Part shown: one piece after another, positions 32,901-59,900 of the stretch | How the letters are laid out: each line of letters begins with the position of its first letter | How positions within the stretch are numbered: position 1 is the first letter of the stretch | From: Thalia democratica | Lineage: Eukaryota | Length of the DNA stretch: 64,000 bases | Assembly (NCBI GenBank): GCA_965202585.1 | Contig: OZ241830.1 | Coordinates: 32,984,001-33,048,000 of the forward strand | Reading direction: 5' to 3' | Made by a program: the position numbers and the translations under genes | Notes under the pieces: model-generated | What the model saw: the letters and a program-made list of their open reading frames with translations, nothing else | What the model was told of the DNA's origin: nothing | Databases searched by the model: none

Positions 32901-35900
32901 CTGAACTGTTCAGGAGGCGTCATCAGCCTGAAAACTAGGAAGTACGAGGAAACGTTGCCTGTTGAAACCACCATACTAGCTGCATTCGGCTGCTCTGAAT
33001 TCGTTGAAGTAATAAATTAAATATTTGGTCACTTTAAATTAATATTGTTGTTTCACTTTACATTGTTGTTTTTGAAAACCAAGAATAACTATAAGTTAAT
33101 TGTACATTAATTTCGAGGTAAAAACGTTGATATATTAACATAAGTGTTGTTAAATTTTGTATAATATTTAAAATACCGGAAAAAAAAGATAATAGTTTTG
33201 CTATGCTTATGTATTTAAAACCAAAGCTTTATTAAACAACTTTTAAATTTACACAATATATCTATACATTTTTTAACATTCATTGAAATAATGTTTTTTA
33301 TAGGAAAACAGTGCAAAATGTAGTGGCAGAGGTAACTTTTCCTGTGGTATCTGTTTCTGCCCTACTGGCTGGCTCGGCATTGCATGCGAGAAAAGCACGA
33401 TTCCTAAAGGGTGCATTGGTCATGACGGAAAAACATGTTCAGGTTAGTTTTTGTAGATTCATAGTTTTCTCACTAGTTAGTTTTAACTTGATAGTCATTT
33501 TGCCATAAAACATTATTTAAAAAACCTTTAAAGAGGTATTTAATTCTGTGTTAAAATTGCGGGTTATTTTTTTCAAGCTTTGTAAGTTACGCTCGATTTA
33601 ATTCATTAAAGTTCGGTTTAGTGTATAAACTTAGTGGTGTGAAACTTTAGTCTAGTTTTATACTTATTAAAACTAATTTCAATAGGATAATGTGCTGAAA
33701 AAAACTTTTTTTAAGTTGTACATATGCTTAAAAACCATTATATTTCAAAAAAAGTTTTCAAAGTTTGTTTGGTAAACAAAGTGAGTTTAATACTTAATTT
33801 AACGTTTAGTGTGACAAAATTTTATTTAGAGCGAAGTAAATGTTTAGAAATAACATACTTTTTAAAAGGTGCACTAATATAACTCTTGTTTTAAAAGATG
33901 TTTAACTATTTTGAAAAAAATATGAAAATTTGAAACAGACACGAATCAGTGAATGTATTATATATCAGATTTAAAGCTTTGACATAAAAAACATTTAATT
34001 TTAGAGCGAGGCGATTGTTCGCCGATAACAAACGAGTGTCAGTGTTTTCCCGGGTACAACTATAATAAGGAGCGGATATACGGGGACTTCTGTGAGTGCG
34101 ATGAGTGCCCGAAAAACGCGGGAGTCGTCTGTAGTGGACACGGAACGTAAGTTAAACTTTCTTATTTATTTTAAGAGTAGTAATTACAATTTTTTTAAGT
34201 ATACTTTTGTTTACTTTAAAGAGTTTGTTTTCAGACTTTAAAATACTGTTAAACCAAAAGATAAAAAATAAATTTTTCTAAATGGTTTGAGAGTTGCTAA
34301 CAAAATATACTACTTATCTGTACTTTTATGCAAACAGTGGTTTTCCTAAATTCATTTAAGATTTTTTATATATTGTCTAGAACTTTTCAGTTTTAAATAA
34401 CATTAAAAATTATTTAGTTACAGTAAAAATACAATTTACACTCAAAATACCATCAACGCGACAAATTTATGCTTTACCAGTTTTATACAAAAGCTTCCAC
34501 ATTCAAACTGCAACAGTTTATTAAAATTTCACCTTTTTACAATTCAAATGAAATAGGCCCACCAAGGTGAGAGAGTGCGGGTGCGAGTGCTTGTGCGACG
34601 AGGGGTGGGGCAGGATCGACTGCAGCTGCAGCATGTCGCGGCTCACGTGCACCTCTCCCGCGGGGGCCATCTGCAGCGGGAAGGGCGTCTGCAAGTGCGG
34701 GACCTGCAAGTGCGAGACCGGGTACACCGGGCCCTACTGTACCGAGTGCATAGAAGGGCCTAACAATGTTAGTTGTTGCAAATGTTGTGAATATGTTTGG
34801 TGTTTTGTTCGTTATGTTTGAAGATATTGATAAAATTTGAATTGTGGCTGAACTTTTTTTTTCTTTCGTTTTGACTTTTTACAAGTTAATTTGAAAATAA
34901 AGGTGTTTGATTATATGCATAATAAATGAAAATAACATTTAAAAACTTTATCTGCAACTTTTTAATGAATTGTAGATTTATGCAAATGAAAATTTTACAA
35001 CATTTGTTTATTTTAATAACAAAAAAAAACTTTAACTGGCATCTAAAATATTTTAAGTTAAGTTACAAACATGTATAAACTGGAATAGAGATCTTTAAAC
35101 CAAGATTAGACATAAAAAAATGTGTTTGTAGATAACTTTTACAAAAAGTGTATCTAATCCATATATTCATACTCAAACGACAATATAACACAAACTAAAA
35201 AATATAAAATGATACAAAAGTGTTACAAAACCTAAGTTTTCTTTTACTTTAACCCAACTATGCTTTACACAGGAATGTCCAAGCTGCGACAAGTTTGAAA
35301 ACTGTGTCAAGTGCACCATGCACGGTACCGGACCTCTGCGAGAAAGCTGCGCGGAATCGTGCCCTCATCCCATACAAGCAGCAGATGTTTACTCGCTCGA
35401 CGACGGTTGGTTTGCAGAATAATTACTCATGCGTGCGATAATCTATTTGAACTTGAAAGTTTACTTTGAACAAAAATGTGAACAAAAAGTTTTTTAACAA
35501 CTAGCTAAACCATTTTTTTTTATTTCAATTGAGTTACCCAACAACGCATAAAACTTTAAACCAATATATAAACATATATTTTTGTAAACTAATATTTTGA
35601 CATTGAACTTTGTAGAAGTACTTGACCGTGTAAAAAATAATTAACTTTTTTTACGCTTTAGCATTCAATGAAAATAAAATATCACCCGGAAATAAGGCAC
35701 ACGTTAACGAAGTGTAAAATTTAAATTATCATCAAATTGCAGAGGAAGCAGATAAAAGGGGGATGACGCTGTGCAGTAAAACTGACCCGCTTGACGACTG
35801 TGCTTTTTACTACGAGTTTGCCACCATCGGAGATGACGAGTACACCATCATTGCTGAGAAAAATAAACGTTTGTATCATATGTACTTTATTTCAGTTTAG

Positions 35901-38900
35901 ATTTGTTTAGCTTTGTAAATAATCGCAAAAACTAAAATAATTTTTGATAAAAGTGTTTTGACTTTAAAAATATTTTATAAACAGTAAAAAATAAAAAATT
36001 GTTTGTAAAGTTTTACGTGAAAAAGAATTCTTTTTGAAATGAAACTTTTGTATTGTTTCGTTGTTTTTAAGACACGAAAAACTTAATAACAGATTAATTA
36101 AACTTTTGTTTAAATTGTAAACTTCAACGTTTTTACATTGATTGAAACAAAACCAATTTTTTTCTTATAAAAGCAATAAAATAAAGTTAACTCTAAAGTG
36201 CTTTTCTATTTAAACTAAAAATCTATTAAATAGTAATGTAAACAAAACAAGCCATTTTGAGACTTTGGAAATTTAAAGTTAAAATTTATTCAGATTAATT
36301 ATTCTACTCTCTACTAAACATTCTTTTTTTTCGTCAAAATTTCGTTTAAGCAATGTAGTTGTCAATAAACCAAGTAATTTACAAACAAAACATTCCCTTC
36401 AGGTTGCAGGAAATCGTACTCCTTGTTGATAATCCTGTGGTGCGTCCTTCTCTTCCTCCTCATCGGGTTGATCCTCCTCTGCTGCTGGAGGTGCTGCGTG
36501 TACGTCATAGACAAGGAAAAGGAGAAAACGTTCTTGAAGGAGAACATTCCATTACCGACACTCATACCCCTCGTTCCTACTATTGGCGCAGGTTTTATGT
36601 TTATTTATACAAATTGTAAATAAAAGCTTAACTAGTTGAAAATTTCTTTTAAATTTTTTCGGACATATTTAAAAAACTTTTTTCTTTTTTTTTTATGAAC
36701 AACCACATTATTTTATTTACTACGTAAATAGTAATGTTTGAAATATTGAATAGTAATTTTTGAAAAAGTCTTTTTAAATGTTATTTGTAAATATCTAGGA
36801 AGCGTGATTGAGTTCATCAAAGCCAAGTACCTGATGAGAAAGAGCGACAAGGTGGCAATCATCCCTGTAAGAAGAAGTTTTACTCGCGGGGAAACCCGGC
36901 TCAACTACCGCACTTACAAAGGTTTGGCGGGAAATTGTAATAACTTATTAATTTTTCAATATGTAAGCTAAAATCTAACTTTTACTAATAAGTAACTTAT
37001 TACACTAGTTGTTTTGAATATTACTGGTTCATTTATCTTTAAATGTTTTATTGTTAACGATGTTTCAGTTGTTGTTGAGCTGATTATACTTTTGTTAACC
37101 TTTGCACTAGATATACATTTTTTTAATTTTACACTTATCAACATCGTTGAACATTAGTGCATTGGTATTGTTTTAACTTTGTATTAATTAATTTCATCAC
37201 AGGTTCTGCTGAAGACAACGATTTTGAAGTTTTGAGTCAAGGTGAGGAAGGAACCATGATCAGAAAACGAATCATGTCAAGAGAAAGGTTATTTGCTTTA
37301 AATGAAAGTATAAACTGCTTTCTTGTTTAATGCTGTATAGTTTTTAAATTCTAACTGTTAGACTAACAGTACGGAAGATAAGAATACGATAAAACCGAAA
37401 AAAACTATTAGTTGATTCTATTATCATGATGCAATGAAATTTTATCACCGTCTTAAAAAGGAGTGAAAAGATCTAACAAGGTTCTTATATTAAAAATTAA
37501 TCATAACTAAAATTTATCAGTGCAAGCCAACAAGAGTCAGAACCTCTGTTGGGCGCCGGCCAAGTTCAAGAAGAGAGAATAAAGAAGGTTGAGACTGGAG
37601 TTACTCAGAGCGGAGTGCATTTCGAGGTCTTGGACGAAAACGACCAGAATCGTCCGTTAGTCCAAGACGATGAAGCTTTCCAGCAAGAGGAAATCAGCAG
37701 TTACGGAATGGGAGAAGTTGTGTGAGTGTTTGTTTTAAGAAAAAGTTATACTTATAACTATGTTTATAATCTAAGTTCAGGTTTACTTTAATTTAGCCTT
37801 TCTTTAAACGTTTACGGTAGTTTATATAGTTTGTGAAAAAATCTATTGTATTATTTTAATTTAAAATTTTATTTTAGTAATGTTTTAACTAATGCATTAA
37901 AAAAACTGACATCCTACATTATTAATCAATAATCTTGATTAATTTTTATCAGTTAACATTTTTCTGTAGTTTCAAAGACGGTGAGGAATATGCAAATATC
38001 GAAATTCCCCTAATATACGATTTCGAAGGTAAGGAGGACGCCTTTTGGGTGGAACTTTACAATCAGGAGAGAGGAACAGCACTTGGACTGAAAAGAACTA
38101 AAGTTGTTGTTATCAAGGATGAAGGTTAGCATGTTTTATTGTTATTATTACAATTTTAATAGTAATAACTGTAAATAATTTAATCTTTTTGACTTTAATA
38201 TTTTTTAAACTTATGGTTTTATTTACTTTTAACTAAAGAAAATTGTATCTTAAGTATTCCTGTTGCAACCTAAACATAACAGAAATTAAGCAGTTGTATT
38301 CTACAATTGTTTCGATACCATAAAACTTAAAACCAAACAGACCACGGAGTAATCGGATTCCCGAAACCCAGCTACGTGTTCAAAGAGAATGACGGGATCG
38401 CTAAAATCCCCATCCACAGAACTGTTGGCATGGACGGACCTGTTAGCGTTGCCTGGGTTACTAGGGACATGTCGGCGTTGGCAGGAACCCATTTCGTCGG
38501 AGGAAGGGGCGTGTGCAATTTCGCTGATGGACAGGTTTGATTTAAGTTAACGATTATTTTAGCTTTGATTTTGTTATATAATTTAATGAAATACTTTACT
38601 ATAGTTATACTTATGTATTTTAATTATAAAGTAAACTTATATTCAACATGTTTTGTATAAAAGTTTATTAATGTTTGTTTTGAACTTAAATGATGTATAA
38701 CAATCAACGAAAATGAAACATTTAATAATAACACAAAAACGTTTTTTTACAAATTTTTAAGTTGTTTACAGCTTAAGGCTGGGTTTTAAAGAAGTTAATG
38801 TTTTAATATTTATTTTTGTAAGCAAATCTTATATTGTTATGATTTATTTAATGAAAAAAATTACAGTGTTACGTAAGGATAAATTAAATTTTGGAAAATG

Positions 38901-41900
38901 TGCGTTTGGTGATTTAATTGCTTTCTTATTTTGCATATTGTGAGTATATTATAAATTTTAAGTATTTCTTTTTGTAACTGCTGTTAATTATCATTTTTAA
39001 AGGATTAATTCAACTTTACTCGTTTAAAAAGTTCAAGGAGTTTGCCAAAAAGCATTAAAAACTAATTCAGTTCAATGTTTTTTGTACTCTTCTCCTTTTA
39101 TCTGTTTTACGTATATTTAAGTGGTTGAGTTATGGTTCTGGAAACTTTCAACACTGTTTTAACGAAATATTTTTATTTAAGAAGTATTAAAAAAGTAATA
39201 AAAAAAATATAGGTGACGCAAACAATAGAAATCCAGCTGATAAACGACCACATATACGACGAGAATGAGAAGGCGTTCAACATTCAACTGGAAGATGTGA
39301 AGGGTGGCGCCGAACTGGACCTGGACCACTGCATGGTGACCATGCTGTCCGATGACGAGTGCCCGCTTGTACAATTTCCCAAGGACGCCTACCCCTTCAT
39401 GGGTTCGTTGATTGATAATTAACTAAAAATTATTAAAAACAATCTCACGAAGTATGTGACATATACAGCGTATGACTTTTGACTGATAGAGCTTAAACAA
39501 AAGAAGTAATTGTAAGGTCAATACTCGTAAAAGCAATACTTTTATATAAAATCTTATTACTTGGATTTATCGTGTTTCCCGCTATAAATTATTTTTTAGT
39601 CACAATGTAATATTTTTAAAACAGAAACGATTGACATAACTAGTTACTTTTTACATGATTGTTAGTGTTAAAATTACATATCTAAAACTTTAACCTAATT
39701 AACACTTAAAACGAGTTTATTTAAGCTAAAAAATGTAAATAACAACTCATAACAGAGAACTGCGGTGAAGCTGATGTGACAGTGTTGCGTACTAGGAGCA
39801 CCAGAGGTATATCGATGGTAAAATGGCACACAGAAGACGACACTGCAATTGCTGGAAAGGACTACGTACAATCATCGGTTTGTTGTTATATGTAAGACCT
39901 ATATTTAAACAACATAGGATTTCATACACTCTATAGGAAAAGGAAATAAAAAAACTGCAAGTTTCGGTTGCTTGATGCAAAAAATATTCTGAAATAAGAC
40001 AGCGAAATTTTAACAGTTTTTAAATTTTCATTATCGAAAAATTAACTTAGTTATCATATATTATTGAAAATTAATCAATTTTTGTAAACAATATGCTATA
40101 TGCAAGCTATGTTCGTGTGGAAGTTTGAAAAAACCTTATCACACACTAACAGGGAGTAGTAACGTTCGAGGATGCAGAAACGGAATCCCACATATTCGTT
40201 CCGATCATTGATAACGACGAGTACGTCACAACAGGAAGATCGTTCAGAATCGTTTTATCTGATCCGTCAACCGGAACGAAACTGGCACCGCTCAACACCG
40301 TCAACATTTCCATCATCGAAGATGACGGTTTGTGCTCTCAGTTGTAAATAACCTGTAAGCTTAGACGTTTCCAAACTCGCCAAATAACATATTTAAGTAT
40401 AGTAGCTCCTTAAATAAAAAGAAATGTAGTATGAAACGTATAATTATGACCGATTTGTCTAGTTCAATTTTCGGACTTTTTATAAATTTTTGCTACTACA
40501 AGGTTTTAAGAAAGAGATTTAGAATTAGTTTATTTTTGTCATTTAACGCTTCGAACTTAAAGTGGCCGAGCAGTTCATCTGTTGTGTAAACATAAAACTT
40601 GCTACTTAAAATCTTAAAATAGAAAACAAGTACAAAACAAGCTATACATAAAGAAAATAAATAAAACACTTTAAGATAAAACATCAAAACCTTTAAAACA
40701 AAAAAAAATAATCTGGAAAAGGGAATACCTAGCTTAAATTAAAATGTAATTTATAGTCGCACACATACTCTATTCCACCGACCGCGAATTCTATCAAGAA
40801 ACAAGAGAACGCTTTCAAATGAAAAAAATTCTAACCTCAAATGACATTTAGATAGGAAATGCGCCCGTGGCTAAAACATAAAGTAGCATAACTTTTATTA
40901 AAATCGTAGTTTCGCAAGCCCACATGAAACTGTTACACTAGCTTTTGAAATGAATTAAAAAAAATGTTTAGAACTTGAAAAGTGTCTGAAAAAAGCTAAT
41001 AGGTGATTAAGCGCGCTTATTTTGTACTTGTAAAAATATCTGTCTAATTCGTATTTAATTGCTCGTGAACTTTCAAAAACCGCATTAGATAGCGATTGTT
41101 AAAGTACATATTTAAATGATTAAATCAATTATAAAAAAATCTCTTTAAACATTGAAACAACACAGTTTATTTTTTACCGAATTGCTGATACTTAAAAACA
41201 GTTTGTTTTATATTAAAAAACAGATTGTTTTCAAAAGCTTAATTGTTTTTACTTGTTATTAAAAACTAGACACGCTTTTTACAAATTTATTATTTCTAAA
41301 ACGTAAATGATTGAACTGCTTTTATTATTAGAAAAAAAACTAAAAACAACTTATTTATAAGACTAAAATATTAGTATCTGCGGAATTTATCTAAAACTTG
41401 TACAGAACCCGGAGTGTTTGAGTTTTCGAAGCCGCTGCTCATAATGAGATCACACAAGACCCTCGGGAGACTGACTATTATCAGGTCTCTTGGATCAGAC
41501 GGCGAGATCAGAATCCCATGGATACTTTCTGCCAACGAAGGAAACGTCGGAGCTATTCCAGATGGTTTGTGTTAAATTTAGTTTGTTTGTAGGTAAGCAC
41601 AATAGTTAAATGAAAAAACTATTTGATTTTAAATTTAAGTTGAAGTACATAGTTGCTGTTATTTTTGCATATAGTTTAAAACTTGGCTATTATGAAGTTG
41701 CATAACTTTTTATTTAGAAATATGTTATGTTGTTTAGTTATATGGAGCTTATTTTAAATGAGTTGCTTAAAAAAATTCAATTTAAAAAATGTAGTTAAAA
41801 ATCAACACTTTAGATATCATAAACTAAATCAAAAAACACATTGAATTATTAAACATATACAATATAAATTATATTACCCAAAATACAAATTATAAGCGAT

Positions 41901-44900
41901 TATCTCATGTTTGCCGACGCCACTGGAAATAAACAGGCGAAACCTCAAATATTCAAAATTTGAAATATTCGGTTACTTCCGTCCGCAATTTATTCTACAT
42001 GCCAAAGGAGAATTTCTTCAAAGCGTTTTAATTAATATTAAATCTTATTAGATAAATTATTTTGTGGTTTACAGAAGAATATGTCGAAAAATATAACCTT
42101 TTTTCAACCTTTTTGTAAAATTTATGTAACAAATGCGTAACAAAAGACAACTTCACAAAATTTTACTAATCAAGATAAGAGTCTGTATTTAAAATATAAC
42201 GTAAACAAATTCGTTACTAAATACACTTAAAAACGTTTTTCGACAAAAGGCCTTCTGAGCATGAAAGGAGAAATGTTGTTCGGCAACGGAGAAATAAGCA
42301 AGCACTTGGACCTCGACTTGTCGGAATATAAAGTTGTTGAGGATATCTCATTCTTGTGCTGCATGCTCCCACCTAGCGGAGGGGCGAAACTGGGCGTTAA
42401 ATCGAAATCAGTCGTTCGTGTGTTCGCCGAAGAAGGTTTGTATTAATTGATTTTAACCTGATATAGTGATATTAGTTTACATAATTGATGAATACTTTGT
42501 TTTATAAGATGTTTTCATTATAAAATCTTTCTAAAATGTTTATATTCTACATTAACTACAAAATGATAGTTGTGGTGCAAATCAGTAAAAATAGTTTTTT
42601 TTTCAATAACTTGTTACGAGTTTTACACAGTTCAAATATAAAACTTTTATTAAGTTTAGATAATTTTAATTTTTCACAGAAATTAAAAAAAAATTGGTTT
42701 CAGTTTTCAAAAGTTTAGAATAAGCACAACTATATTAGCTTGTAACTCTCGTAACTGAATCGTTTACTAATAAATACTAATTGAAAACATGTTCTAGCAA
42801 AAAGTAAAATTTGTTTAGATCTCGGAACAATTTCGTTCGCGCAACCCAGCTTCGATGTCATGGCAACCCAGGGAATAGTGACCCTGTTGGTAACCAGATC
42901 AGGAACCTGCGAGAATGCTGCATTTGTTATTTGCGAGACTGGTGACGGAACCGCGCAGAGTGGACTTCACTACAGAGGTGAGTACACTATAATTTGAAAA
43001 AAAGTTTATTTGTTGTATACTTATTTAGTACGCTTTTAAACGCAGAAAATAAAAATATTTTTCAAAAAAATAAAATGGAAAAGTTAAAAATTTTACAAAC
43101 AAAATTAGCTTTTGTTTTTTTATTCGATAGACGAAACAGAACATAAAGTTTTAATGCGAGTTTCAAAAATATACTTTCAAACAAAATTGGCGACTTGCTG
43201 TGTGTTTATTTAAAATATTCTTACATGTTCAAAAGCAAATCCTTTTACTTCCATTAAATTTATCCAAAACCACGAGTTCATTTAAATTATCCGCGTGTGC
43301 AATGCAAATCATTTTATGGATTATCGAAACCGATTATTTGCATTTTTGCTGCAACGTGCTTCGCGCTTGAGTGATTGTTCAAGCACCGTTATGACGTAAT
43401 AACACACGTGTTTGTAATTACCGCCTCAACACAGAGAGGTGTTACATTCAAGTGTAGTTCAAATTTCGTTGATTTACCGCAGCAGCTTTTAAACCGGTTT
43501 CGCACGCTTTGTATTTTTTAACAATTTTTTAGTAGAGTTTAGTTATCATTTAAAACGTTTTAAACATTTTTTTGTGTTTTAAAAATAAATTACAATAGCC
43601 ATTGAATTGTAAATCAAAGAAATAATTTAGTTAAGGAGTTAAAGTTTTCAAAATGAACTAAACATTTTTAAGTTTATTTATAAATATTTTGTTGTCAAAA
43701 CTTTCGTTTTTACATAACAATACGAATGTAAAGCTGACCAATATACAATGCTTATTTATTTTTTGTAATTTGATAATGATGCTTACGATAGTTATATCAA
43801 ATAGATTGTAAAAGACGGTAAAAAATGAATAAAACCTTTAACTCAATCTAAACAGTAAACGCAATAATTCTAGTTTAATGCAAATAAGTAAACTCACAGG
43901 TGGCAAGATGAGCGTGGTGTTCGATACTGGCGAGGCGACGAAGCAGGTGCAGATTGCAATATACAACGACCCGAACCACCAGGGTGTGCTGAACTTCACC
44001 GCGACACTGCACGGGTCGCCCGGCGGACCCAGCATTGGCGATGTGGGCAAGGCGCAAGTTAACATGACTTGCGTCTCTGCAGGTTTGATGGTTGAAATTA
44101 AACAAGTTTAAAAGTTGATTTGATATGCGCTTAAAAAATAAAAACACTTGGTACGTCAAGTTTAAACTAAAGCCTAAAATTATCAAAACGGTTTTTGTTT
44201 AAATAAGTATGACTTTTGTTTAGAATTGGTTGTAATTCTGACTTACAAGCCCTTATAAAAGTCAAGTTTTAAGTTTCTATTAAATTCGTTTAAATTTCGA
44301 AGTGGAATAAAATGCTTAGAAGTTTTGAATACTCAATTTAGTTTTTCAAGTTTTGAATGCACACTTTAGTTTTTTAACTTTTCAATACGTTACAAAAAAA
44401 TACATTTTTTTTGTTTTAACAAAACAACTATTAAAATAACTTCAGAAATATCTTTAAAATAATACTTGAATTTTCCAAATGTGTAAAAAGTAATTTCTTT
44501 ATAAGAATGATTCTCATACGAAAAACAAACGTTTTGTTTCTTTAATTTTTTCTTTGGTATTGTTAATTTGAGACTTAGGAAATAGTATAAATTTTAACAT
44601 CAAGTTAAACCAAAGATAGAAATGAGTTAAGTTTAGAAGAGTAGTAGAAACTACAGTTTTTATTGGGTAAACATAAATTGATCGCTTAAAACTGTTTCAA
44701 ATATTTCAAAATAGTATTTAGTATACTGCTGTATTTTAAGAGCTTTCAAAATACTATTTTTTTAACAAGTTTGTTGTCAAATTAATTTGATCTTAACAAA
44801 AGTACAAATTTAGCTATTAAATTTTTTTGAAAATTTTTTACAAACAAATATTTACTTGTCTCGTTCATTGTGCTTTCAATTTCAATGCGGTTTCGCTGAA

Positions 44901-47900
44901 AAGTTTACTACTTTAGCAAACAACTGAAACCACTGCTCTAAAGCAAAAATATATGATTAAGTAGCCAACACTTTTATCTTTTTATTGAAAGGCAGAAACT
45001 AGAGAAAATAGTGAAATAAATCTTTTTTTGACATTTTATACGGGATTACTGGTCCATTATGTAAAACATGATAAATTTGGTTGTGAAATACCAAGACATA
45101 ACACTTCGTGATGTATTACAAATGTATAAAGTGCGGTTGGATTGGATATCAATCTGTAGCTGTAGGCTATACGCTTGATAGCTTTAAATCTAAGCGCTAA
45201 GGAATTTGTGAATTCATCTCCATAAAGATTAAATTGCGTCGCTCTAAGAAGCCATTATCACGTAATTACATTTTATTACGAGGGCTTTCCAATTTAACAT
45301 TGAATACACACTTGACAGCTTTTGCAAATTACTTGAAAAAACTACACAGCTATGCACAGCTGAGAAATAACTTTGATATTTTTTTATTATCATATAATGT
45401 TAAATTAGTTGTAACCAAACACCATTTTTAAGAGCTGCTGTAATTTGAGGTAAATTTTAACTTAAAAAAAAACGACGAAATTTTTCATGTTATTTAAATG
45501 TATTTAAATACTTTTAAACAGCGGTTTTTGATAAACTATAAAAATTAACAATATTGTCTTCTCTAATGAGGACAAATATTGTCTTACTAATCTATAAAAC
45601 TTATGTTTTACTGGTGTTTGTTTAAAAAAGATGCCTTATACTCAAACAACTTTTTTGGTAGAACAAATACAACAAAACTAGTAATTTTAATAAACAATTT
45701 TTTAGTGTTAATATATATACCTATGCCGACTAAAACAAAACTAACTTTTTGAAAAAAATCGCAAAATTACCTAAAATTTAGTATTAGTATAACCTTTTTA
45801 CAAAAGATACCTATGACTTTATTTATATAAACAGTTCCAGTGATACCTGTGGGTCTTGCTCCAACATCAGGACCTTGCACTGTCGAATTTGCTAAAGGAA
45901 AATACATTACAAGAAGAAGTGCAAAGGTGAAAATTTAACGTTTTACTTTTGTGGAATGTGAACTCGACACGATAAATTTATAATAAGTTTACGCTCTAGT
46001 GCAGTGAACTATACCAAAATAAAAATGTAAAATATTCTGTATATTAAATAAAACTCTATTATGGAAATTATAAGCTAGCTACGCTACAATTTTTGGTGAT
46101 TCACTGTGTATTTTAAACAACATATAAGTAGATATTTTTTGCATTTGAACTGAATATAAAATTTGGACTTGAAGTTTTAAACATTTTTCTTTTTCAGTAA
46201 AACAAATATTTTAACAATTTTAAGTTTTTTAACAGAAGTCAGTTCATTTGGTCAATCGAAAAAGTTAACCCCAATAAAAGTAACCAAGATAAAAAAAAAT
46301 GAAAAATGTATATTTTACGCAGAACTTGCGCATTCCAGTACATCGTTCTAACACCGAAGGATGCTGCGAGGCCACTTGGGTTTGTGACGTCACTGAAGAC
46401 GATCTTGACGTCATAATCAAGGTTGAGGAGAACAAGAGAAAGTCCGTCATTTCCATGATATCAGCATCTTCTCTTCAGTCCTCAGGGGAAAACTCCTCCG
46501 ACGAAGATGGTCTCCTAACTGGAACGGTCTGTTGAACAAAATTAATTTTAATGACAATATCTGTTTTAGACTGTGAATGATTAATAAAACAAATATAATA
46601 CTGTGCGCATAATTTCTTATTAGTCCTCATGAGTACTTTGTGAATTTTTTTCGAGTTTAAACTTACAACATGCAAAATAAATTTTAATTGTTTTTCTTAA
46701 TAAAAGTTTCTTAAATTAAAAAAAACCCTTAGTTTAAAAGGATATTTTGAGTAGACTCTATTGCAAAATTACGCATTAATACTTCAAACAGCACCTTGTC
46801 CTTATCAAAACGACCTATTTCAGATAAGATTCGAAGACGGAGTGAGCACGGTTGAGATCGAACTCCCACTGAGGGCAAAGAAGGCGTCAACCTCCCCGCA
46901 GAACGAAGCACTGGTCAGCTTGTCCGGATTGAGGTGGGTTGAAGCCGACAAGGATCCCGAAGACTTGAGGTTGGGACTCAAAGAGGCTCAAGTCATCATA
47001 CTCAACGATATCGGTAAGAAAATTTAAACTATTTTATTCAATTAACTATAAAAATTAGTATAACAAGTTTATTACTAAGATTTTAAGTCTTAGATCGATT
47101 AAGTTTTTTTAAATTCTACAAAGTAAAAGCTAATTAAAGTACATACAAAACATTTAGATGGTTTTATCTAATAAAGTATAAGTACTTTTTTACTATAATG
47201 AAACAGTTAAAAAAATAACTAAACTTTCAAATCAACAATACAGACGCTGGAACGCTGGGATTTTCCAAATCGACGTACTCAGTGAAGCAGAACGAAGGAG
47301 TGATCACCGTTCCGGTCCACCGACTTGGCGGCATGGACGGAAAGGTGACGACAAAATGGCGCACGACGGAAAAGAGCGCGAAGGAGGGCAGAGATTTCGA
47401 GGGAGGAAGCGGAACCCTCACCTTCCTCCACAATCAGGTTTGAAAGTAGAAAATAACAAAGTGTCTATCTTTTTTAAGAAAATATTGTATATTAGTGCTA
47501 ATTAAGTTGTTTTTATATGTTCGGAAAATATGATTTTGTTATAATTTTATTTAAATTTTTTTAATTGTCTGTTTTAGTTTTATGAATCCTGAACTTATAA
47601 TTTTTTTAAATACCAAAAAACGCTATTTTAGTTTCGTAAACATCTTAACTTCTTTTAGAAAACTGCACTACTTAAAAAGTGTTCCATATAAAACAGTTTC
47701 TGAAAGTTTCCATTTTGTCGTTAAAAAAATGTGTATAGGTACAGCAAACAATAGAATTGAAGTTGAAGGATGCCATCAGAGATGACAGCGATGAAAGGAA
47801 GTTCACGATTGAGTTGTACAAGATAAGAGGAGGTGCAAAATCTGGGTTGAGACAAGCAACTGTTTACATACTTGCTGATGAAGGTATTGTGTTTTTATAT

Positions 47901-50900
47901 GTATAATAGAAATCTACTTTCACTTTAGAAATGTTAAAAAGTTTTATGCAACGTTTCAGACTGTCTTTTAAAATTTTGACTTGTTTATTGATAAAAAGGA
48001 TAGGTAAAGTTTACTTTTAATAAACGAATTTTAACAACTGACCGTTTTATTTAAAATAAGTATATACTAAATATATACAATTAATAGATAAGTTAGCTAA
48101 AGTATGTTTTACCTTTTAGTTAAGATAATTGAACTTAATTCCATAAAATGTTTGCAAAACACCCGAAAAAAATCAATCAAATTGAAAAGAAAAATTAAAA
48201 TAAAAAAAGATACAAAAACTTATAGATACAAAAAAAAATCTTAAATTTTACAAAACAAAATATTTTTAGACCGCAGCATTGTGCAGTTCAGCAAGGAATC
48301 ATACCCGGTTATAGGAAACGCAACAAGCGTCAAAATTCCCATCCTCCGCACTGGAAGTTGTCAGAAGAAATCAGTTGCAGTTTACAAGACTGTTGAGGGA
48401 ACTGCGAAGCCTGGTGTTGACTTTGATGATAAACAGGTATAGTTGTGCAGTAAAACTATAAACTAAAGTAACAGACAAACAATTTACTAAATTTTGAAAT
48501 TCTATACTAATTTTGGTGCTAGATAATGTTTTAAACCTCTTTTTAATTGATAATTTTTATTACTTATTAGTAAATTGATACTTTAATAAGTCCTTAATAC
48601 TTAAAGTTTATAATTATTATAACTTATGGTGTACTATAGTTATAATTTACATTATTGTAACTGTAAAGTATTATTGCTTTTATATTTTTCATATTTTTTT
48701 GTTATACAAAAAAGTATTTAAAAATATGAAATAAATTCTTACACAAAAAACTACTTTTTAAAAACTCTTATTGCATTATTAGGACTACGTGGTGTTTGAG
48801 CCCGGTATGACTCGCGCCACCATTGAAGTCGGGTTGTCGGGTAAAGCTATTGAGGCTAAGGAGTTCACTGTGGAGCTGTCAACCGAATACGATGCTGAAG
48901 ATGAAAACGCTCCTCAAGATAAGGATCTCGGTAAATCCGTGCTAGGAGCTGTGAAGACGGCAACCGTGTCTATTGTCAGCGCCAGAGGTTAAGTGATATT
49001 TTAAGTATTTTTTTAAACTTAAAATTTATTTTAAAGCATTTTAAAATAAAAGTTTAAATAAGAAATGTATTGTTAAAGTACACGAAGAATAATACTTTAA
49101 ATTGAATTTCATAAATACATAAATAAAATATCAAAAAAATTCAAACTATTATTGAGATAGTAAATAAAAGTTTATTTGCTTAAGTAAGTTTAACAAAAGT
49201 TTACCAGATATTTAAAACAACAAACATTTTAGTCATGCAATTAAGAAATTTTGTTGCACACAGAACCAGGTCAGTTCGACTTCAGCAAGCCGTCGTTCGT
49301 GTTCCGAACCAGCAAACCGGTCGGAATGGTCCCCATAATCAGGTCGGGTGGCACGGACGGTCAAGTTGACGTACCGTGGCGCATCGAGTCACTGGACAAA
49401 CCTTCGCCGTTCGCCGGTGCCGAGGGAACACTCAAGTTTCAGGACGGGGAAGTCACCAAGAACGTGGAGATCACGCTGGAGGGCGTGCCTAGCGACGAGT
49501 TCGTCATGGTGCTGTTGCCAAGCGACGACGGCTGCCTGGTGCTGGGCAGCTCGACCAGGGCTACTGTGACCATCATCGGTGAAGCAGGTTTGTCGAACTT
49601 TAAAACATTAATGAGATTTAGATTTTAAAACTCTCTGTAAGGACTGTGTTTTTTAAATATTATTGTTTTTTTTTTAAATAGACACTAAATGTGTTAAAGC
49701 TATTTTATTTTTTGTAAACTCTGCCTGGTTCTAGCACAAAGTTTTTATATAATCTAAAGCGTGACAATTGTACCTAAATAGTATTAGTTTAATAAAGTTT
49801 ATGTTTTAGCTTGATCAACTATTGATTTTGTTTCATTTATACTAACAAAATTGTTTGTACTTTAAAACAATTCACAGAGGAGCCAATGATAGTGATGAGA
49901 AGGCCTGAGCTGCAGCTGAAGTCGGCCGAAGTGGTCGAAATCACCGTGTTACGTCACGGAAACGTCAATGACGTCACTTTTGTCGGCTGGGAGAGCGCTA
50001 ACGGAACGGCCATCGAAGGTGTCAACTATTTGGGCGGATCCGGTAATTGCTAATATTTTTTGAATTTTGTTTGTACATTTTGTATGGTACTTAGTGTAAA
50101 AAGAAACTGTTTTTTGATAATTTCAATAGTAATAAATAAAACTTTTATCAGAACATACGTAAACTTTTGTAACTTTTCTAGTTTCTAAAAACTTATACTA
50201 CCGTGAAGTAAACAAAATATCATAAATTAACATTTGCTTGTTTAAGAAATAGTATTTTTTCAAATTTTACTTCAATTGTTGAACTTATTTAGGAAACATG
50301 GTGTTTGATCCTTATGAAACAAAGAAGAAGATTCTGATACCAGTTTTGAAATTGTCCGAAGAAGAACCAATAAATTTCACAGTCACTTTGTCGCATGTTC
50401 GCGGAATCGGTAAACTCGGTTCATCCAACTCCACTGAAGTTATACTCGAACCATTAGAAAGTATGTAGCTTGTATTTTTTGGTTTCGTGATATTTATAAC
50501 ATTTATTTTTACTTTGCAGAAATCACACTTCAAGGCGAAGCAGCTCCAATGCCACAATCAGGTAAAAATTTTATTAATTTATTTTAAATTGAATTTTGTT
50601 CTGGTAAATAGCGTAAAATTAAATTAGTTTTTGTAATAACCAAATCAAAACTTAATGTATTAAGCAAATATAAATAAATACTTCAAGTACCAGAACATCT
50701 GGCGATCAAACGAAACTTAAACTAACAAACCGTAAACTACTGTAAGTTAAGATTGTTAAAAATTCCAAGTAAATGTTTATCATTCGAACAGACATAGAAG
50801 TAGAGTTCGTGCGCAAGAGGTACTTGTTCCGTCAATCGCAACCGTCAGCCAACATAACAGTCAAGCGTTCCTCATCCGACGGCCCCTGCACCGTTCAGTG

Positions 50901-53900
50901 GCAATCGGTGAACCTGCACCCCTTGTTCATGGACAACTACTCTCCGATCAGGGCCAGGCTGGACACCACCATGTCGTCGACGGGCTTCAGCGAGCACGAC
51001 GACCAGTCCATGATCACTTCGCAGGGCCACAGGAGCGTGACGAGCATCGGGGACGTGCTCGATGAAGATCAGATCGATTGGGGATCCGGTTGGTGTTTTG
51101 TGTATAAGTTTATGCTAGTTTTTATCTTTTTAAAGTTTATTAATAAGTTTTACCGTAATCTCAGCCTGTTTTAATCTGTAATAGTATTTTATGTCAGCTA
51201 AAGCTCGTTCTTTTAATTTTCAAAGTATTTTGATTACTGTATGTCTTTAGAAAGCGTTGATAAAGTTTTACTACTCTAATCAATGAAAACCAATCTTGTA
51301 ACAACAATAGTAAATAAAACTCACATTGCTTTAAAGGTTCAGTGACATTCGAGGACGGACAAGAGGAAGCGAACATCGAAATAGTTTTGGGCAGGGAGAT
51401 GCCGATGAGGGAGATGAGCTTCAAATTGGAACTGTTGGATCCTCTGGATGATAACGTCAAACTCGGATTCCTTCCCACGACTCTCGTGACTGTCATCAGG
51501 GATAAAGGTAAATTATTAGCATATATCTTTTTAAACGGTCATTTTATATTACATTGTGTAAAGCTTTATATTATGCGTTGCCCTTTTGAATATAACTTGA
51601 TGGGTAATATTAAGACAAAACATCAGTATTGTTTAAAATAAGAACTTTAGGAAAAGTGGTGTTTTTAAAAATTAAGATAAAAGCCGAACTCACAAAAATA
51701 TCATATTATTCTACTTTTATAGACGCGGGAATTGTTGGTTTCCCCAACTCAAGGTACGGCTACAACGTTACCACGGAAATTATTTTGGTTCCGGTTCAGC
51801 GAACATCCGGGGCCGACGGAACCATTTCAGTTTCGTGGAGCACTAAAGACGCAACTGCAGTCGGTGAGTTTTCTTGTGATATTGAACAAGTAGAAATATT
51901 TTTTGTGGACTTAAGCTTTCTTCAACGAGTCAACTACACGAAACATATATAAAATAGTTTTTAGATGGTTGTTTGTCAAGTTTTTAATTGTTTTAGTTTA
52001 TAAAACACAATAAACTAAATAACAAATTCATCAGGTGGCAAGCACTACCTGCCAGCGGAAGGAAACCTGATCTTCCAGGACGGTGAGGTGAGAAAGGAGA
52101 TAGAACTGAAGATGCCGGTGAGGGTGGAGTTTTTTGAGGAAGACGAACTCGCATTCCACGTTGTACTCAGCAATCCCACAGGAGGTGCTAATATCAACGT
52201 GGCCGAGACTAAAGTAGTACTCGAAAACGATTTGAGTGAGTTTTATATTGGTTTTAACAAAAAAAAAAAAAAAAGTTATGAGCTTAATTAATCGCAAAAA
52301 ATTACTAAAATTAAAACAAAAACTTAAAATGCTGTTTTATAAGTTGAAAGAAAAAAAATTAAAGCACAAATAGTTAAAAAATGTACAATAATTACATTAA
52401 TTTTTTACACATTAAACTTACAATTATTTGTATCTAAAAGAGTTTATTTTTAATCTTAGTGAATTTTAATTTTTGAAAAACTAAACCTTTACTTGGCCAC
52501 TAAAAAAACTTAAAACTTTTTAACTACTCTACAGTTTTTTATCTTGATTGAAACTTTAAAAGGGTGTATTACAAAAATACAATAAGAAAATTAAAAAATA
52601 GTTAAACGATTTTTGTCAACTGTTTAGTAGAACGACTAGTATCACTTGTCAAATATTTTTTTCCAAATAAGCTACAACTATCGATAATAAAAAATTTACA
52701 AAATACAAAACTATTAAATCGTATACTTTAGAATTGTTATTACCTGTCAAGCAGTTTCGTCGAATAAAACAGCTAATTACTCAATAACCTAAACACAGCT
52801 CGCGGTGAACTTTCGTTCGAGGCGGACAACGCCAGTTTCAACCAATCAGACGGAAGCATCAACCTTCCAGTCCACCGCAGCAAGGACCAGAGCGGCATAG
52901 TGACGGCGTTCTGGCAGGCGAGGGGAATGCCCGGCAAACCGAGGTGCAGGTACGAGGGAATGAACGGCACCGTTGTGTTCCAAGATGGGGAAAGTGTTAA
53001 AGGTGATTGTTTTGATTGATGCGTACAAAAATATTTTTCTTATTATGACCGGTACTGTTGTGTTCAATGATGGTGAAAGTTTGTATAGTGATTGTTAATT
53101 TTGTTTGGTATTTTATTTAGAGAACTTTTCACAACTTTCATTGATAATCATATTAAGAAAATGTTATTTAAACAGTTAAATGGTTCAGAAAAACATTATA
53201 AGAAACTTAATGACTTCTTTATTTGTGCTGAATTTGAAAATAGTCCGTTGTGGTTTAATTCTATTAATAAACTAATTTGTAAACATTTTCAATATGAACA
53301 GATATAACAATCAAGTTGGTGCCACAAGTTCAATCAGTGACTACCGACCACGTGGTACTCGAAATTGATCCACCTAGTGGTAGAGCCTTGTTAGGGGAAT
53401 ACCCTGATTGCTCCGTAGTAATCAACAACGACGTTTGTGAGTAAAAAAACATCTTTTGTTGAACTTATATAGAAAAAAAGTTTTAAGTTTTAAAACACAA
53501 GGCTACTCAAGCATTTTTATAGAAAAAAGAATAATGATCAATAACAGCAAACTTGTTTTGTTACGTAATATATAGTTGTTTTTTATAGTGTTTTACTTTA
53601 AAACTCGTTTTTTTATCACTTGTTAAATAATTTCAATGGTGTAAAAATGTTATAAAGTAAACAAATTATCTTGAATGTAACATTTATTAAATATTTTTTA
53701 AAGCTTAAACATTTTAAACTTTCAGTCCCAGGAAACTTCAGTTTGGAGCACAGTGACTACAAGTTCCAACAGAGCGAGGGTAAAGGAATTGTTAAAGTAT
53801 TGAGAACTGAAGGAAAACGCGGCAATGTTTCACTCTCTTGGAAGGTTTTGATTGTTTATCATTAAAACTACAAACTATCTCAAGTTTTGTGAGAGATCTT

Positions 53901-56900
53901 TGAAAAGTTTTTTTAAATAAATAGTCATATTTAAAAAATTAACATTTTCTTGTTTATAAACACTTTGGTTTATATTATAAGTAGATAAACAAAGTTGAAA
54001 CAACATTGAGCTGCTTTGTAAGTTTTAATGCAGTTGTACTAACATAGAACACTAAAAATAACAATTTTAGTTAGAATGTTTCTCTATAAATTAGTTTAAA
54101 CAAAATTTAAAGTTATTTTTAACTTTTTAAAATTTTTGCAAATACTAATTTTCACATTAATTGTTTGCAATAAATTATGATAAAAACATCCCATTCAGAT
54201 CGTACCAGCTTCAGATGCTGCTTCATTCTCCACTATGATTGGACAAAACGGAACAATTGAGTTTGAAGACGAACAAAGCTTCGGTGAAATTGAAATAAAA
54301 TTCCCTGAAGACACAGTCGAGGAACAAGAAGAGTTAGTTTATTTTGTTTTAATAGATTATTTTTTGACATTCAAACTTTGTAAACCAAGTATATTTAGAG
54401 TGATACTTTTGTAATACATCACTTGCTTAGCTTTTTTCATCTAGACTATATGTTTAATAAGAAAAAGAGTTACAAGTGGCGCTGTTGTATTATTCTGGAT
54501 GATTATGACAATTAATTACCTATCATTACTATAACAAAGTGTTGTGTTAGATTTTGACAAAGTGTTTCAATCAACAGAGTAATGATAATGCTTCTGCCAC
54601 CCGACGGTAGAGCTGACCTTTTGGACCCATACAAATCACATTTACTGGTAGACAACGACCTCCAGTGTTCAATCAATTTCACATCTGATGTTTATAACAT
54701 TCGTGGAGATGTGGACAGCTTTTTGTTGCCGCTTGTGAGGGACGGACCCAAGTACAGACCCATCACCGTCGCGTATAAAACTATTGGTGATTAAGTTTAT
54801 TGTAAAGACCATTTAAATTTGATTGTAAAAATTTTCTAATAAGTCATGTTTTTATTAATTTATTGCATTGAACTAACTAAGGTATTAATATTATTTTGTA
54901 ACGGCACAAAACCTGAGATTCTTAATTACAATTATTTTTAAATTAAAATTTAACTTAATTATTACTTTTACGTTGTTTAAAACTATTTATTCAAAACCGT
55001 ACTTACTATAAAAAATTTTGACAAAAGTAAGTCACCACATAGTATCACTATAATCAAAAACAGACGGAACAGCTATTGATTGCAAGAATTTCATCGGAGG
55101 CGACGGAGAGGTGGAGTTCGGACCTGGTGAGGTGAAAAAGGATATTTTGCTGCCTGTTATGAACGACAACCAGGGAGGTGTGCTGACATTCCAATGTCAA
55201 TTGACCAACGTGCAGAGTGGTGGTCCCGGAAAGATCGGTGTCATCGGGGACTGCACTGTCAATATTGAGAACATTCCTGGTCAGTTCTAACAAAATGTTT
55301 TAGAATAACGAGATATTGATAGTTTGTGCATTACCCAGTTGTTTTTGTCATTCATACTCAATTGACGAATTTTTACTTTCAAACGACAAAAGTTGTGATG
55401 TGAATTTATTCCGTAGACTGTTTAAAAGCTTACTTATTTGATTACTTTCAAGTATCTGAAAACTACGAAACAAAAACATAGGCTGTATTGTTTCACATTT
55501 AACCGTAATTTACTGACTTTACGATATCAATATAAAAGTATCCTTTTAAATATCTAATATTTTTATTCTCACAGCTGCGGGTCGTGTGGACATGTCATCT
55601 CCTGAAGTGATGACGAAGCAGAGCAGCGGAGTGGCGATGATCGGAGTGACAAGATCTTCAGGTAGGAAGGGAAGAGCGGAGGTTCCGTGGTTCGTGGAAG
55701 TCATACAGGGAACGAGTAAGGAGGATGATGACCACTACAACAAATTGGAAGGAAAAGTTGGTTTTTTGAAAAATCATTTTAAAAACTTACTGTTCAAAAT
55801 ACTTTTTTAGTGTTTTATTCATTTGTTTCAAATATTTATCTTTCAATAAATGATTTTGAAATACAATTTTGTTAGAGCACTATGTTTTTTTGTCAATTTT
55901 GATCAATTAGTGCTATTTAAGTAGATAAAGCTATACAATGTTATTTTTTGTTATCCAAGTTATCCAAACACGTTTGCATTATTTTTTAAAATTAATCCTC
56001 GTGAAAGCTTAAATCTAAAAGTTTAATTTGTAAACTAAATATAACTAAAGTACATTTTCATGTACCTAGGTTATAAGCTATACATTCTTCGCAGCTCATC
56101 TTCGAGGATGGGGAAACGGACAAAGTGATTGACGTCACGTTGAGCGACAAACCGAGCAATTATGACGTCACGATACTCGACGTCACATTGATGACGCCGA
56201 TTTCACAAGACGGTGTCGTTCTCGGTGATTCCCCAACTTCAAGAGTAACCGTCGACAATGACATTGGTTATTTTGAACTTATATACAAATAATGTAAAAC
56301 GTAAAACTAAGTTTTAAGCTTAAAGCATCAGTCTTTTTACAATTGTTTGAATTTCGCTTTTTAATTAAGCTATGAAAAATAAGTTACATGATTAAAACTG
56401 GGTTTACTAATAAAACTTTGGATGTTTTGATAATTTAAAGTTTTGACACCGAAAAACTCTTAAAAATTATTTAAAACAAAGCTGTATCTTAAAACTTTAT
56501 ATAAACAAAACAAAATTTCCAGACGCGGGCGTGATTGAAACGGAGCAGGAGCAGATAATAGTGTTTGGAACCGACGCAAACGTCAGGATTCCCATTCAGA
56601 GGAACGGACCGGGAGTCAGGTTTCCTGCTACTTGCACTTGGGAAGCTGAAGACGATACCGCAATCAGGGGCAAGCACTACAGAGCGTGGAAGGGAATCAT
56701 AGAGTTTGAAGAAGGAGAAAACAAGTTGGTGTATATTAAAAAAGAAAATTCTTAGTTTTGTAGTTTTATTTTACAACATTTCGTTTTGAAGTTTTTAATG
56801 GTCTATGAGCACAGAATGTTTGGAAAAGGTTTTTAACTTATAAATGAAGGTTACTTACTATTTAACGATGTATTGTTTTTTATGTTTAAAAACAAAGTGC

Positions 56901-59900
56901 TTTGATATAATGTAGATAAAGCTAACATAACTTTTATTGAAAACCAATGATCAAAGCTGCTTTGTATTTAAATTCAAGTTTTTAGTTTTAAGCTTTTTTT
57001 TAAAAGTTCTGTTAGCTATTTCCTTATACTACTAAATAAAATCGAAACAATTTAGCTTAGATTGTTTTCTATAGAATTTTTAAAAGTTTAAAAGTAGAAA
57101 AAGATATAGCAACAGTGGTGAAACAACAACTTTCATCAACAGAGGTGAAATTGTTATTCCAATCGCTAACGACCCGAGTGGTGACGTCATGTTTTTCAAC
57201 GTTAAACTCATTGAAGCGCAAAATGGCGCGAAAATTGGACCAATGAAAAACACGCAAGTTATGATCGATCACGTTGAAGGTTTGTTTACTTTAACTACAC
57301 TTAAACATCATTTCGAAAAAAAAATCTGTAAATCATTTTCAAATTATTTTTGATAGAAAGAAAAAGTTCTAACATAAAACAAAAACTTGTTTTTTATAAA
57401 ATTTTGATATAGTTGTTTTAAAACACAAAATTTGTAAAATAATCTTTAGAAAAAAATTGATGTCTTTAATAGATATACCGACCTTTAAATTTTTTTTTTA
57501 ATAATTCATTATCATAATTTGTATAAAATTTTACAATGTGTTGTTAAAAGCTTAAAGATAATAATATGTTACTTAAAACTCTAAACCGAAAATAAAACAT
57601 AATCATAATTTCAGAAAAGACCCAAGAAATTCTCGTACAACGACCTTGGAGCCCGGATGTGAACGTCGCTGGCGAGATATCATTCAGTGACGTCACAATG
57701 AAAGTGCAACAAAGCGAGGGAGAACTGGTTTGCAAGGTTTTGAGAAGTATTGAGAATGAGGCGAAGGGAAGAGTTGTGGTTCCTTGGAGCATCCAAGGAG
57801 GCGGTCCTTTGTACGAGGTTTGTAAAGTTTCATATTTTTTTTGAAAATTGTACGAAAGTAATTGAAACTAAATTTTTCAAAATATAAAACAAAACTTTTA
57901 AAATAGTTAAACAATGTTTTCTTGTGGTCTATAGGATAAACTATACTGTTCAAAGACTAAAATTAAAAACTATCAGCTTTTTTTAAATTTTATAAAGTTT
58001 TATAGGGTAAAAACTTTGTATTAAATTTTTACAAAAAGTAGATTGGGTTGTTTTTAAACGACTAAGTTAACTTGATAGTAAACAAGTTTTTTTTAAAATT
58101 AATTCAAACAAAATGAACAAATGACAGAAACTTTTCGGACAAGAGACTTTCAAAGAAGGTGAAACGGAAAGCCATATAAAAATTGAGCTGACAGACGCGC
58201 CTCTCCAAGAAGAAGAAAACAACTTCACGTATGTTTTGCTTACAAGCTGTTACAAGTTTTAACTACTTTAAATAAAATGCTACAACTTTATAATAAGTTA
58301 TGTTTAAAGCATATATTACAACTCGTTGTGTTTATATATACTAAGTAGCAATTTGTTAGCCACACATAATTTATTGATTAAAACTAAATTCAACAGCAAT
58401 TACTTTTAGCTTGAGGTTATTATTAATCAGTTGTTTTAAAATATAGGTACTGTCTTTAAAATAAAAAATAAGTTTTATTGCTTAAACAAACAGCATTGTG
58501 CTCGGCAAGCCAACCGGAGGATTTGCACTTGACGAAGATGCAAGCGAGTGCAAGGTGACGGTTGTGAATGACGCCAGGAAGGGAGAAATAAGCTTCGATA
58601 AAGATCAGATCACCGTGGATCAGTCGAGTGAAAAGATCGTCATTCCAGTACACCGAACTATCAATAATAAAAGTAAGTGTATATAAACACATTGGAAAGA
58701 GTAATTGTATCTAACTAATTAAACTTTAATTTTTTTTTGTAAGACATATTTTAAGGTACCCTTTAAATTAGAGTATCTAATAAAATAATGATTAACAAAA
58801 GTTAGTATCTAAAGTGAAATATATTTTATTCAAAAGTATTACAAACATTTAAAACCAAAGTTGTAGTGATTTCGTTATTAATATGAAAGTAGCTTAACTT
58901 GTTTGTTAAAAGTTTTAACCACATATACAAAAAATTATAAATTAAAGTTTACAAAAACTATATTTTTTACAGAGAAAGTTCGCGTTCAATGGAAAACAAA
59001 ATCTGTTGACGGTAAAGAAAACGGTTTCGACAACTTGTCTGGAATTGAGACGTTTTCAAGTGGCGAGGAACTTTCTCACATCGAGATCAAGATCGATCAG
59101 AAGCCGCTGGATAGTTCACAGGACACATTCGTCGTTGAGCTGATCGAACCAAAGAACATTTTTGCCACTTTGGGAGAAATTCCAACGTGCAATATTACGA
59201 TAAACAACGATATTGGTTAGTACTTAAAAAGCTTACAGGTATTTTTTTGTTTTAAATATGTAATTTAAAACCCTTATATAAATTTAATGTTACTAAGAAG
59301 ATATCAACAAAAAAAAAACATTAAATTAAAAGCTTTTTTAAAATCAACAAAACTTAAAAAAGTTGGGAAAAAGTTTTTTTTATTTTGAATTATTTCTTAA
59401 AATTTATAAACTCATAATGCAATTAGTTTAAAATAGTATAGATAAAATGTATCAAATCTCTAAAAAAGTTATAAAATATTCGAGAAATAAGCTTCATGTT
59501 AAAACAGTTGCTTATATTTTAGCACAAGCGGTGATAGACTTGAGTGAAACGAGCAAGCAAGTTAAACAGAGCGACGGCAAATTGCAGCTGAAACTATTGA
59601 GAACAAAACAACCGCTAGGTAGCGTGCAAGTGCCATGGAAAATTGAACCTGATAAAAACGATTCAGTTTACTATGATATAACAGGTCTATATGCTTGTTA
59701 TTTAGTACTACATGTAGTAATTGTTGAATTTAATATAACTCTAAAAGCTTTAACTTTTTTATTGAAAAAAAAAATTGTTATCGAGTTTATCAAAAAAATT
59801 AACAGTTTAAGAAGAATATTTTTACTAATTTTAACTTTTTGTTAAAACCGTTTAATTATTTTAAACATTTGATAGCTGCTATATCTAACTCAGAAAATAA

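Follow-up and report, generated by a model that had tools for sequence, protein, structure and literature searches.

A diverged three-fold tandem repeat of a linker and five Calx-beta-like domains in the predicted cytoplasmic tail of a beta4-like integrin beta chain of Thalia democratica

The stretch analysed here (64,000 nucleotides of Thalia democratica, assembly GCA_965202585.1, contig OZ241830.1, positions 32,984,001 to 33,048,000; hereafter the window) is AT-rich eukaryotic DNA. Its plus strand carries a gene which, judging from the deduced domains, is a giant beta4-like integrin beta chain with an array of Calx-beta domains within its cytoplasmic tail. Upstream of 36 kb stop-free pieces match the Pfam families Integrin_beta (VWA) and EGF (EGF_2), and downstream of the membrane helix a run of Calx-beta-like pieces extends to the window end, an FN3 domain being located at 61.8-62.2 kb (fn3 match at 61805-62002). 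The combination of an integrin beta ectodomain, a single membrane helix and a tail containing both Calx-beta and FN3 domains is that of the integrin beta4 type. The fifteen domains next to the membrane very probably represent three diverged tandem copies of a block comprising a linker and five domains, as deduced from the sequence comparisons described below.

Exons were chained by reading frame and GT-AG sites, resulting in a model of 52 exons (36378-63887) which encodes 3,025 residues with no stop codon and with GT-AG borders throughout. Since donors of this genome often read GTTTG, a generic splice matrix mis-ranked many junctions, which were therefore re-curated by hand. Of the exons of the model, 34 fall within 36.3-55.3 kb. 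Between 36591 and 55279 GTTTG was observed at 9 of 33 donor sites, and the acceptors often read ACAG with little pyrimidine tract.

The tail was segmented with an iterated profile for which domains 2, 7, 9 and 12 served as seeds. From the membrane helix up to 55279 it delimits precisely 15 Calx-beta-like domains and, distal to this position, domains 16-21, an FN3 domain and domains 22-24 within the window. The comparison with Pfam PF03160 (cut-off 27 bits) was based on stop-free exon pieces only, domain 4 not being among them. Domains 2, 5, 7, 8 and 12 score 29.7-48.9 bits and thus exceed the cut-off; half-domain pieces of domains 3, 9, 10, 13 and 15 reach 12.8-22.8 bits, and domain 14 reaches 13.3 bits. 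Positions 2-5 of each unit were assigned to PF03160 by this test. The opening domains of the three units (1, 6 and 11, referred to as type A) are, by their predicted sequences, very divergent and best named Calx-beta-like.

A super-repeat with a period of five in Calx-beta domains 1-15 had been proposed in a preliminary description of the window, and the pairwise comparisons bear it out. The mean Smith-Waterman score amounts to 121 for domains five positions apart and to 113 for domains ten positions apart, every other distance giving 49-78, and the identity of domains at the same position is 28.2% vs 22.5% in the curated alignment (permutation p <= 5e-5). Among the periods 2 to 7 tested on this alignment only 5 stands out. 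Domains 1, 6 and 11 are mutual best partners, as are 2, 7 and 12; domains 4 and 9 choose each other and 14 chooses 9, while domains 5, 10 and 15 pick one another plus the distal domains 17 and 21. An ordered tandem block in which domains at the same position resemble each other more than their neighbours was hence found for positions 1, 2, 4 and 5.

The units (667, 619 and 623 residues) furthermore align co-linearly across almost their full length, linkers included. Against a baseline of 43 +/- 5 for shuffled sequences, the Smith-Waterman score is 690 for units 1 and 2 (33.8% identity over 580 positions; BLASTP E = 2e-76), 526 for units 1 and 3 (E = 1e-55) and 459 for units 2 and 3 (E = 2.5e-47), with an identity between units of 27-34%. 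These comparisons were made unit against unit, as a self-BLASTP of the whole sequence returned the identity match only.

In the maximum-likelihood tree of the domains, for which the loops of the A-type domains were cut out of the alignment, clades are formed by domains 1, 6 and 11 (type A; support 83/70), by domains 4, 9 and 14 (type D; 86/84) and by domains 5, 10 and 15 (type E; 54/76), the last beside domains 17 and 21. Domains 2 and 7 (type B) pair with a support of 93/91, and domain 12 is placed beside them without being resolved, the group of all three not being rejected by the approximately unbiased (AU) test (p = 0.51). The grouping of 1/6/11, 2/7/12, 4/9/14 and 5/10/15 on which the preliminary description had staked its proposal is thus compatible with the tree. 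Domain 13 groups with the distal types across a branch supported by 97/99, and its Smith-Waterman score is 170 with domain 19, as against 78 with domain 3 and 37 with domain 8.

Domains 3 and 8 form a weak pair (54/76). Both were observed to be closest to the upstream B-type domain of their own unit (score of 144 to domain 2 and of 105 to domain 7, respectively). This likeness of their sequences hints at a local conversion or at a B-derived third position.

At most domain junctions 1-3 residues lie beyond the profile ends. Only three junctions are longer, those after domains 5 and 10 (15 residues each) and that after domain 17 (19 residues). The preliminary description, which calls the linkers Pro-rich, needs correction for linker 3 with its 2-3 prolines. 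Linkers 1 and 2 have the motif L(V/A)PT(I/S)G in common, which immediately precedes the (I/V)EF with which the A-type domain starts; the coding parts of linker 2 (44073-44082 and 45835-45878) are interrupted by an intron of 1,752 nt. Each A-type domain carries an extra loop at the same site (79, 31 and 42 residues in domains 1, 6 and 11), which is acidic and rich in Ser/Thr and contains an LDE(D/N)-like motif common to the three. All peptides quoted in the preliminary description were found at their positions; the start of domain 14, given there as VPGNFSL, reads FPGNFSL once the exons are spliced. The features are compiled in Table 1.

Table 1. Coordinates within the window of the membrane helix, the linkers and the Calx-beta-like domains of the integrin tail. 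Bit scores refer to Pfam PF03160, numbers in brackets after partner domains are Smith-Waterman scores, and X4 denotes the transcript-like contigs described in the text.
Feature	Coordinates	Strand	Remarks
Transmembrane helix, integrin beta chain	36423..36488	+	hydrophobic 22-residue stretch in exon 36378-36591; Integrin_beta VWA and EGF matches upstream
Linker 1, juxtamembrane, opens unit 1	36537..36593	+	KENIPLP...TIGAG; 4 Pro in 19 residues
Domain 1, type A	36591..38120	+	best partners 11 and 6; exons 36799-36921, 37203-37287, 37521-37721, 37970-38124; acidic loop at 37241-37710
Domain 2, type B, canonical Calx-beta	38124..39353	+	43 bits on first exon; partners 7 (229) and 12 (205)
Domain 3, position 3 of unit 1	39360..40323	+	22.8 bits, C-terminal half; weak pair with 8; nearest is neighbouring domain 2
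Domain 4, type D	40327..42428	+	best partner 9 (155); in D clade
Domain 5, type E, closes unit 1	42435..44072	+	29.7 and 19.7 bits on two halves; best partner 10
Linker 2 (18 protein letters, not shown)	44073..45878	+	15 residues beyond profile ends; junction in X4
Domain 6, type A	45873..47009	+	loop at 46425-46517; best partners 1 and 11; three junctions in X4
Domain 7, type B	47013..47879	+	48.9 bits; phase-0 intron at column of domain 2; junctions in X4
Domain 8, position 3 of unit 2	47883..48980	+	33.7 bits; phase-0 internal intron common with domain 3
Domain 9, type D, single exon	48987..49580	+	21.7 bits; best partner 4
Domain 10, type E, closes unit 2	49584..50453	+	found by profile; two junctions in X4
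Linker 3 (16 protein letters, not shown)	50454..50561	+	mostly from 42-nt microexon
Domain 11, type A	50561..51503	+	loop at 50956-51081; best partners 1 and 6; no Pfam match
Domain 12, type B	51507..52231	+	21.9 and 30 bits on two halves; best partners 2 and 7
Domain 13, position 3 of unit 3, not of the 3/8 type	52235..53432	+	nearest is distal domain 19; {3,8,13} rejected
Domain 14, type D	53436..54659	+	best partner 9 (118); in D clade
Domain 15, type E, closes unit 3	54663..55279	+	found by profile; domain 16 follows directly, no linker
Domains 16 and 17, extra D-like and E-like pair outside the triplication	55279..57272	+	16: best partner 9 (150); 17: groups with 21 beside E clade; 19-residue linker after

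The arrangement of introns adds to the evidence on the origin of the block. In each of the three units, the A/B border and the border between the third and the D-type domain are marked by phase-1 introns. Units 1 and 2 additionally agree in a phase-1 intron at the D/E border and in phase-0 introns located at identical columns within domains 2/7 and 3/8; counting these two internal ones, five positions and their phases are common to both units. Unit 3 has three such positions in common with unit 1 and three with unit 2, and further introns within its domains are specific to it. Taking together the co-linear unit alignments, the clustering by class, the positions and phases of the introns and the loop insertion in domains 1, 6 and 11, we conclude that the block was very probably duplicated as a whole.

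The preliminary description had assumed a block triplication. The duplication of a linker plus five domains stands, while a single triplication event is replaced by a different history: two tandem duplications of a multi-exon block, one after the other, are likely, since the introns specific to units 1 and 2, the highest alignment score, which these two units share, and the (unit 1, unit 2) topology in the B and D classes point in this direction. Unit 3 would have split first, leaving units 1 and 2 as the youngest pair. The copied module would have consisted of a short proline-containing linker, an A-type domain with its acidic loop, a canonical B-type domain, a variable third domain and the D- and E-type domains; phase-1 introns lying between domains presumably allowed whole blocks to be copied in frame. 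Later on, the domain at the third position of unit 3 was possibly exchanged, or it became similar to the distal domain types.

The relation of unit 3 to the distal part of the tail suggests a different reading, in which the proximal repeat is no separate triplication: a single amplification series would have given rise both to it, as the old and diverged end, and to the distal modules of an FN3 and four Calx-beta domains, with linker and A-type domain exchanged for FN3 at the first position. In line with this, the part of unit 3 that begins with the C-terminal half of domain 11 and ends with domain 15 is co-linear with domains 17-21 (167 bits, as strong as with unit 2), and domains 13-15 score 347 against domains 19-21 and 223-226 against domains 3-5 or 8-10. 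Moreover, the E clade has domains 17 and 21 as its sister group, and the proximal and the distal modules both comprise five domains with the E-type domain in last place. A single series nevertheless appears somewhat improbable because domains 18 and 22 are not B-type but are separated by the 97/99 branch from the A, B and E types; in addition, the FN3 domain has no similarity to type A, and the window holds only one and a half distal modules. From the sequences, the distal module may derive from the same ancestral block as unit 3.

If the domains had instead been duplicated singly, convergence or position-specific selection could produce similarity at a distance of five domains without any duplication of blocks. 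The class topologies do differ, types A and E being unresolved, and domains 3 and 8 are closest to their own B-type neighbours, as would be expected in this case. However, convergence accounts neither for same-phase introns at the same columns in 2/7 and 3/8 nor for co-linear alignments over about 600 residues that include the linkers, nor for a loop inserted at one site in domains 1, 6 and 11, and it seems very unlikely.

The gene model itself can be compared with two kinds of contigs. Run X4 is of unrecorded kind, and none of the runs listed in the search was registered as RNA; the X4 contigs nevertheless skip introns and are thus transcript-like. They match ten of the modelled junctions, including those of the microexon; in addition to the latter these are 44082/45835, 45926/46323, 46526/46824, 47013/47244, 47437/47739, 47883/48270, 49587/49878 and 50042/50293. 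The 42-nt microexon at 50520-50561 reported in the preliminary description was confirmed: it has GT-AG borders, and an X4 contig contains 39 unplaced letters between 50460 and 50789, which is the gap predicted by the microexon, as its remaining 3 letters fit either side of the gap. The intron preceding it (50461-50519) has a length of 59 nt, the other introns of the model ranging from 148 to 1,752 nt.

Contig C130 (96 kb) of the same assembly contains a second copy, its positions 30001-60000 being co-linear with 31573-61576 of the window and 93-94% identical overall. Within the modelled gene the exons are 98.05% identical to this copy and the introns 93.7%, and the codons of the exons differ by 113 synonymous and 28 non-synonymous changes. 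This contrast between exons and introns, together with the excess of synonymous changes, suggests that the coding sequence is under constraint by purifying selection. The microexon is 100% identical in both copies, and its flanking introns are 95-96% identical. The copy on C130 is most likely the other allele or haplotype rather than a paralogue, and searches of the own genome with A-type and B-type exons revealed no paralogue besides it. The alignment with C130 contains six gapped exon positions. At the exon 58494-58672 the aligned copy differs in length by one base, either a frameshift or an alignment artefact. Furthermore, an in-frame deletion of 6 nt was observed at 48884, in the acidic loop of domain 8, in DNA contigs of the runs X1-X3.

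That the pattern is an artefact of the assembly or of the exon model, as could be suspected from about two thirds of the junctions being predicted and from the ambiguous exons of the domain 1 loop (37203-37287 and 37521-37721, the least certain of the model), is exceedingly unlikely given units of 27-34% identity, which are not assembly duplicates, a co-linear and probably allelic copy with purifying selection on exactly the modelled exons, and transcript-like contigs which join the exons as modelled.

Several points weigh against three copies of one five-domain block. No match to PF03160 at E <= 1 was obtained for the five A-type exon pieces of domains 1, 6 and 11, and the assignment of type A rests on the profile built within the window (seed domains 2, 7, 9 and 12; 3-24 bits) and on hhalign, which aligns type A with the remaining domains at 99.6% (E = 2e-23). 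The tree support is weak for the E clade and for joining domain 12 to domains 2 and 7. The third position fails in unit 3, the group {3,8,13} being rejected (AU p = 0.012); together with the weak pairing of domains 3 and 8, this agrees with the earlier remark that position 3 fits least well. The junctions outside 45.8-51.8 kb are predictions. Finally, neither the protein library nor metagenomes yielded an orthologue of the gene. A HMMER search of the whole protein library with the single-exon domain 9 returned only a 120-residue fragment of 99% identity and generic Calx-beta arrays, and none of the best 150 matches resembles the integrin, membrane-helix or FN3 pieces of the gene. A metagenome scan with the exon of domain 11 detected no relative.

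Regarding the function, each unit might constitute a stiff segment of five domains, given that its internal junctions extend only 1-3 residues past the profile ends, and the 15-residue linkers that set the units apart could act as hinges. The single acidic loop displayed by each unit could provide a regularly spaced site for docking or regulation. This picture of stiff segments, hinges and docking or regulatory loops was deduced from the anatomy of the predicted protein and is doubtful. Still less probable is an extension to the whole tail, which would follow one five-domain period (proximally linker and A-B-x-D-E, distally FN3 and four Calx-beta domains, with a common C'-D-E end) and might serve as a molecular ruler for a periodic cytoskeletal lattice, docking via the A-type acidic loops in the proximal and via FN3 in the distal part.

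The A-band super-repeats of titin consist of blocks of 7 and 11 Ig/FN3 domains which originated from block duplication. Similar to these, the integrin tail contains an ordered block of distinct domain types in tandem, in which domains sharing a position resemble each other more closely than neighbours do, and the term titin-like used in the preliminary description is appropriate only in this formal sense. In contrast to titin, the block is present in three copies only, its domains are Calx-beta-like instead of Ig/FN3, it belongs to a membrane receptor, where it is located in the cytoplasmic tail, the blocks are separated by proline-containing linkers, and no periodic partner lattice is known. 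The Calx-beta domains CBD1 and CBD2 of NCX1 are connected by very short junctions, and one of them contains a long disordered loop. Short junctions and a long loop within a domain also occur in the integrin tail, but the A-type loop precedes the F.DGE strand according to the alignment to the usual motif order, whereas that of NCX1 is the F-G loop. Long tandem arrays of Calx-beta domains are likewise found in ADGRV1/VLGR1 and in the sponge aggregation factor, where they are extracellular.

Vertebrate integrin beta4 has the same order of beta ectodomain, single helix, and Calx-beta followed by FN3 in the tail. The vertebrate tail, however, comprises one Calx-beta domain, four FN3 domains and a connecting segment, with no repeat of Calx-beta blocks, compared with 15 proximal domains in three blocks and further distal ones in the gene described here. 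The pair of Calx-beta and integrin beta-tail was listed in a 2024 paper among domain pairs of vertebrate origin (PMC11788884). At 29280-36591 of the window an integrin beta ectodomain was observed joined to Calx-beta, the AT-rich genome not having a vertebrate appearance.

In the literature searched no paper joins "Calx-beta" with "super-repeat", and no prior description was found there of an ordered block repeat of Calx-beta-like domains inside an integrin cytoplasmic tail. In giant modular proteins a super-repeat usually indicates either that a filament is bound periodically or that blocks were amplified in the past, and the repeat pattern alone does not establish a function. The domain map, with its types A, B, D and E, its linkers and its acidic loops, can guide the choice of pieces to be expressed and of loops to be tested for partners. 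It also suggests a relative order for the growth of this long tail, in which unit 3 and the distal modules have features in common and units 1 and 2 would be the latest copies.

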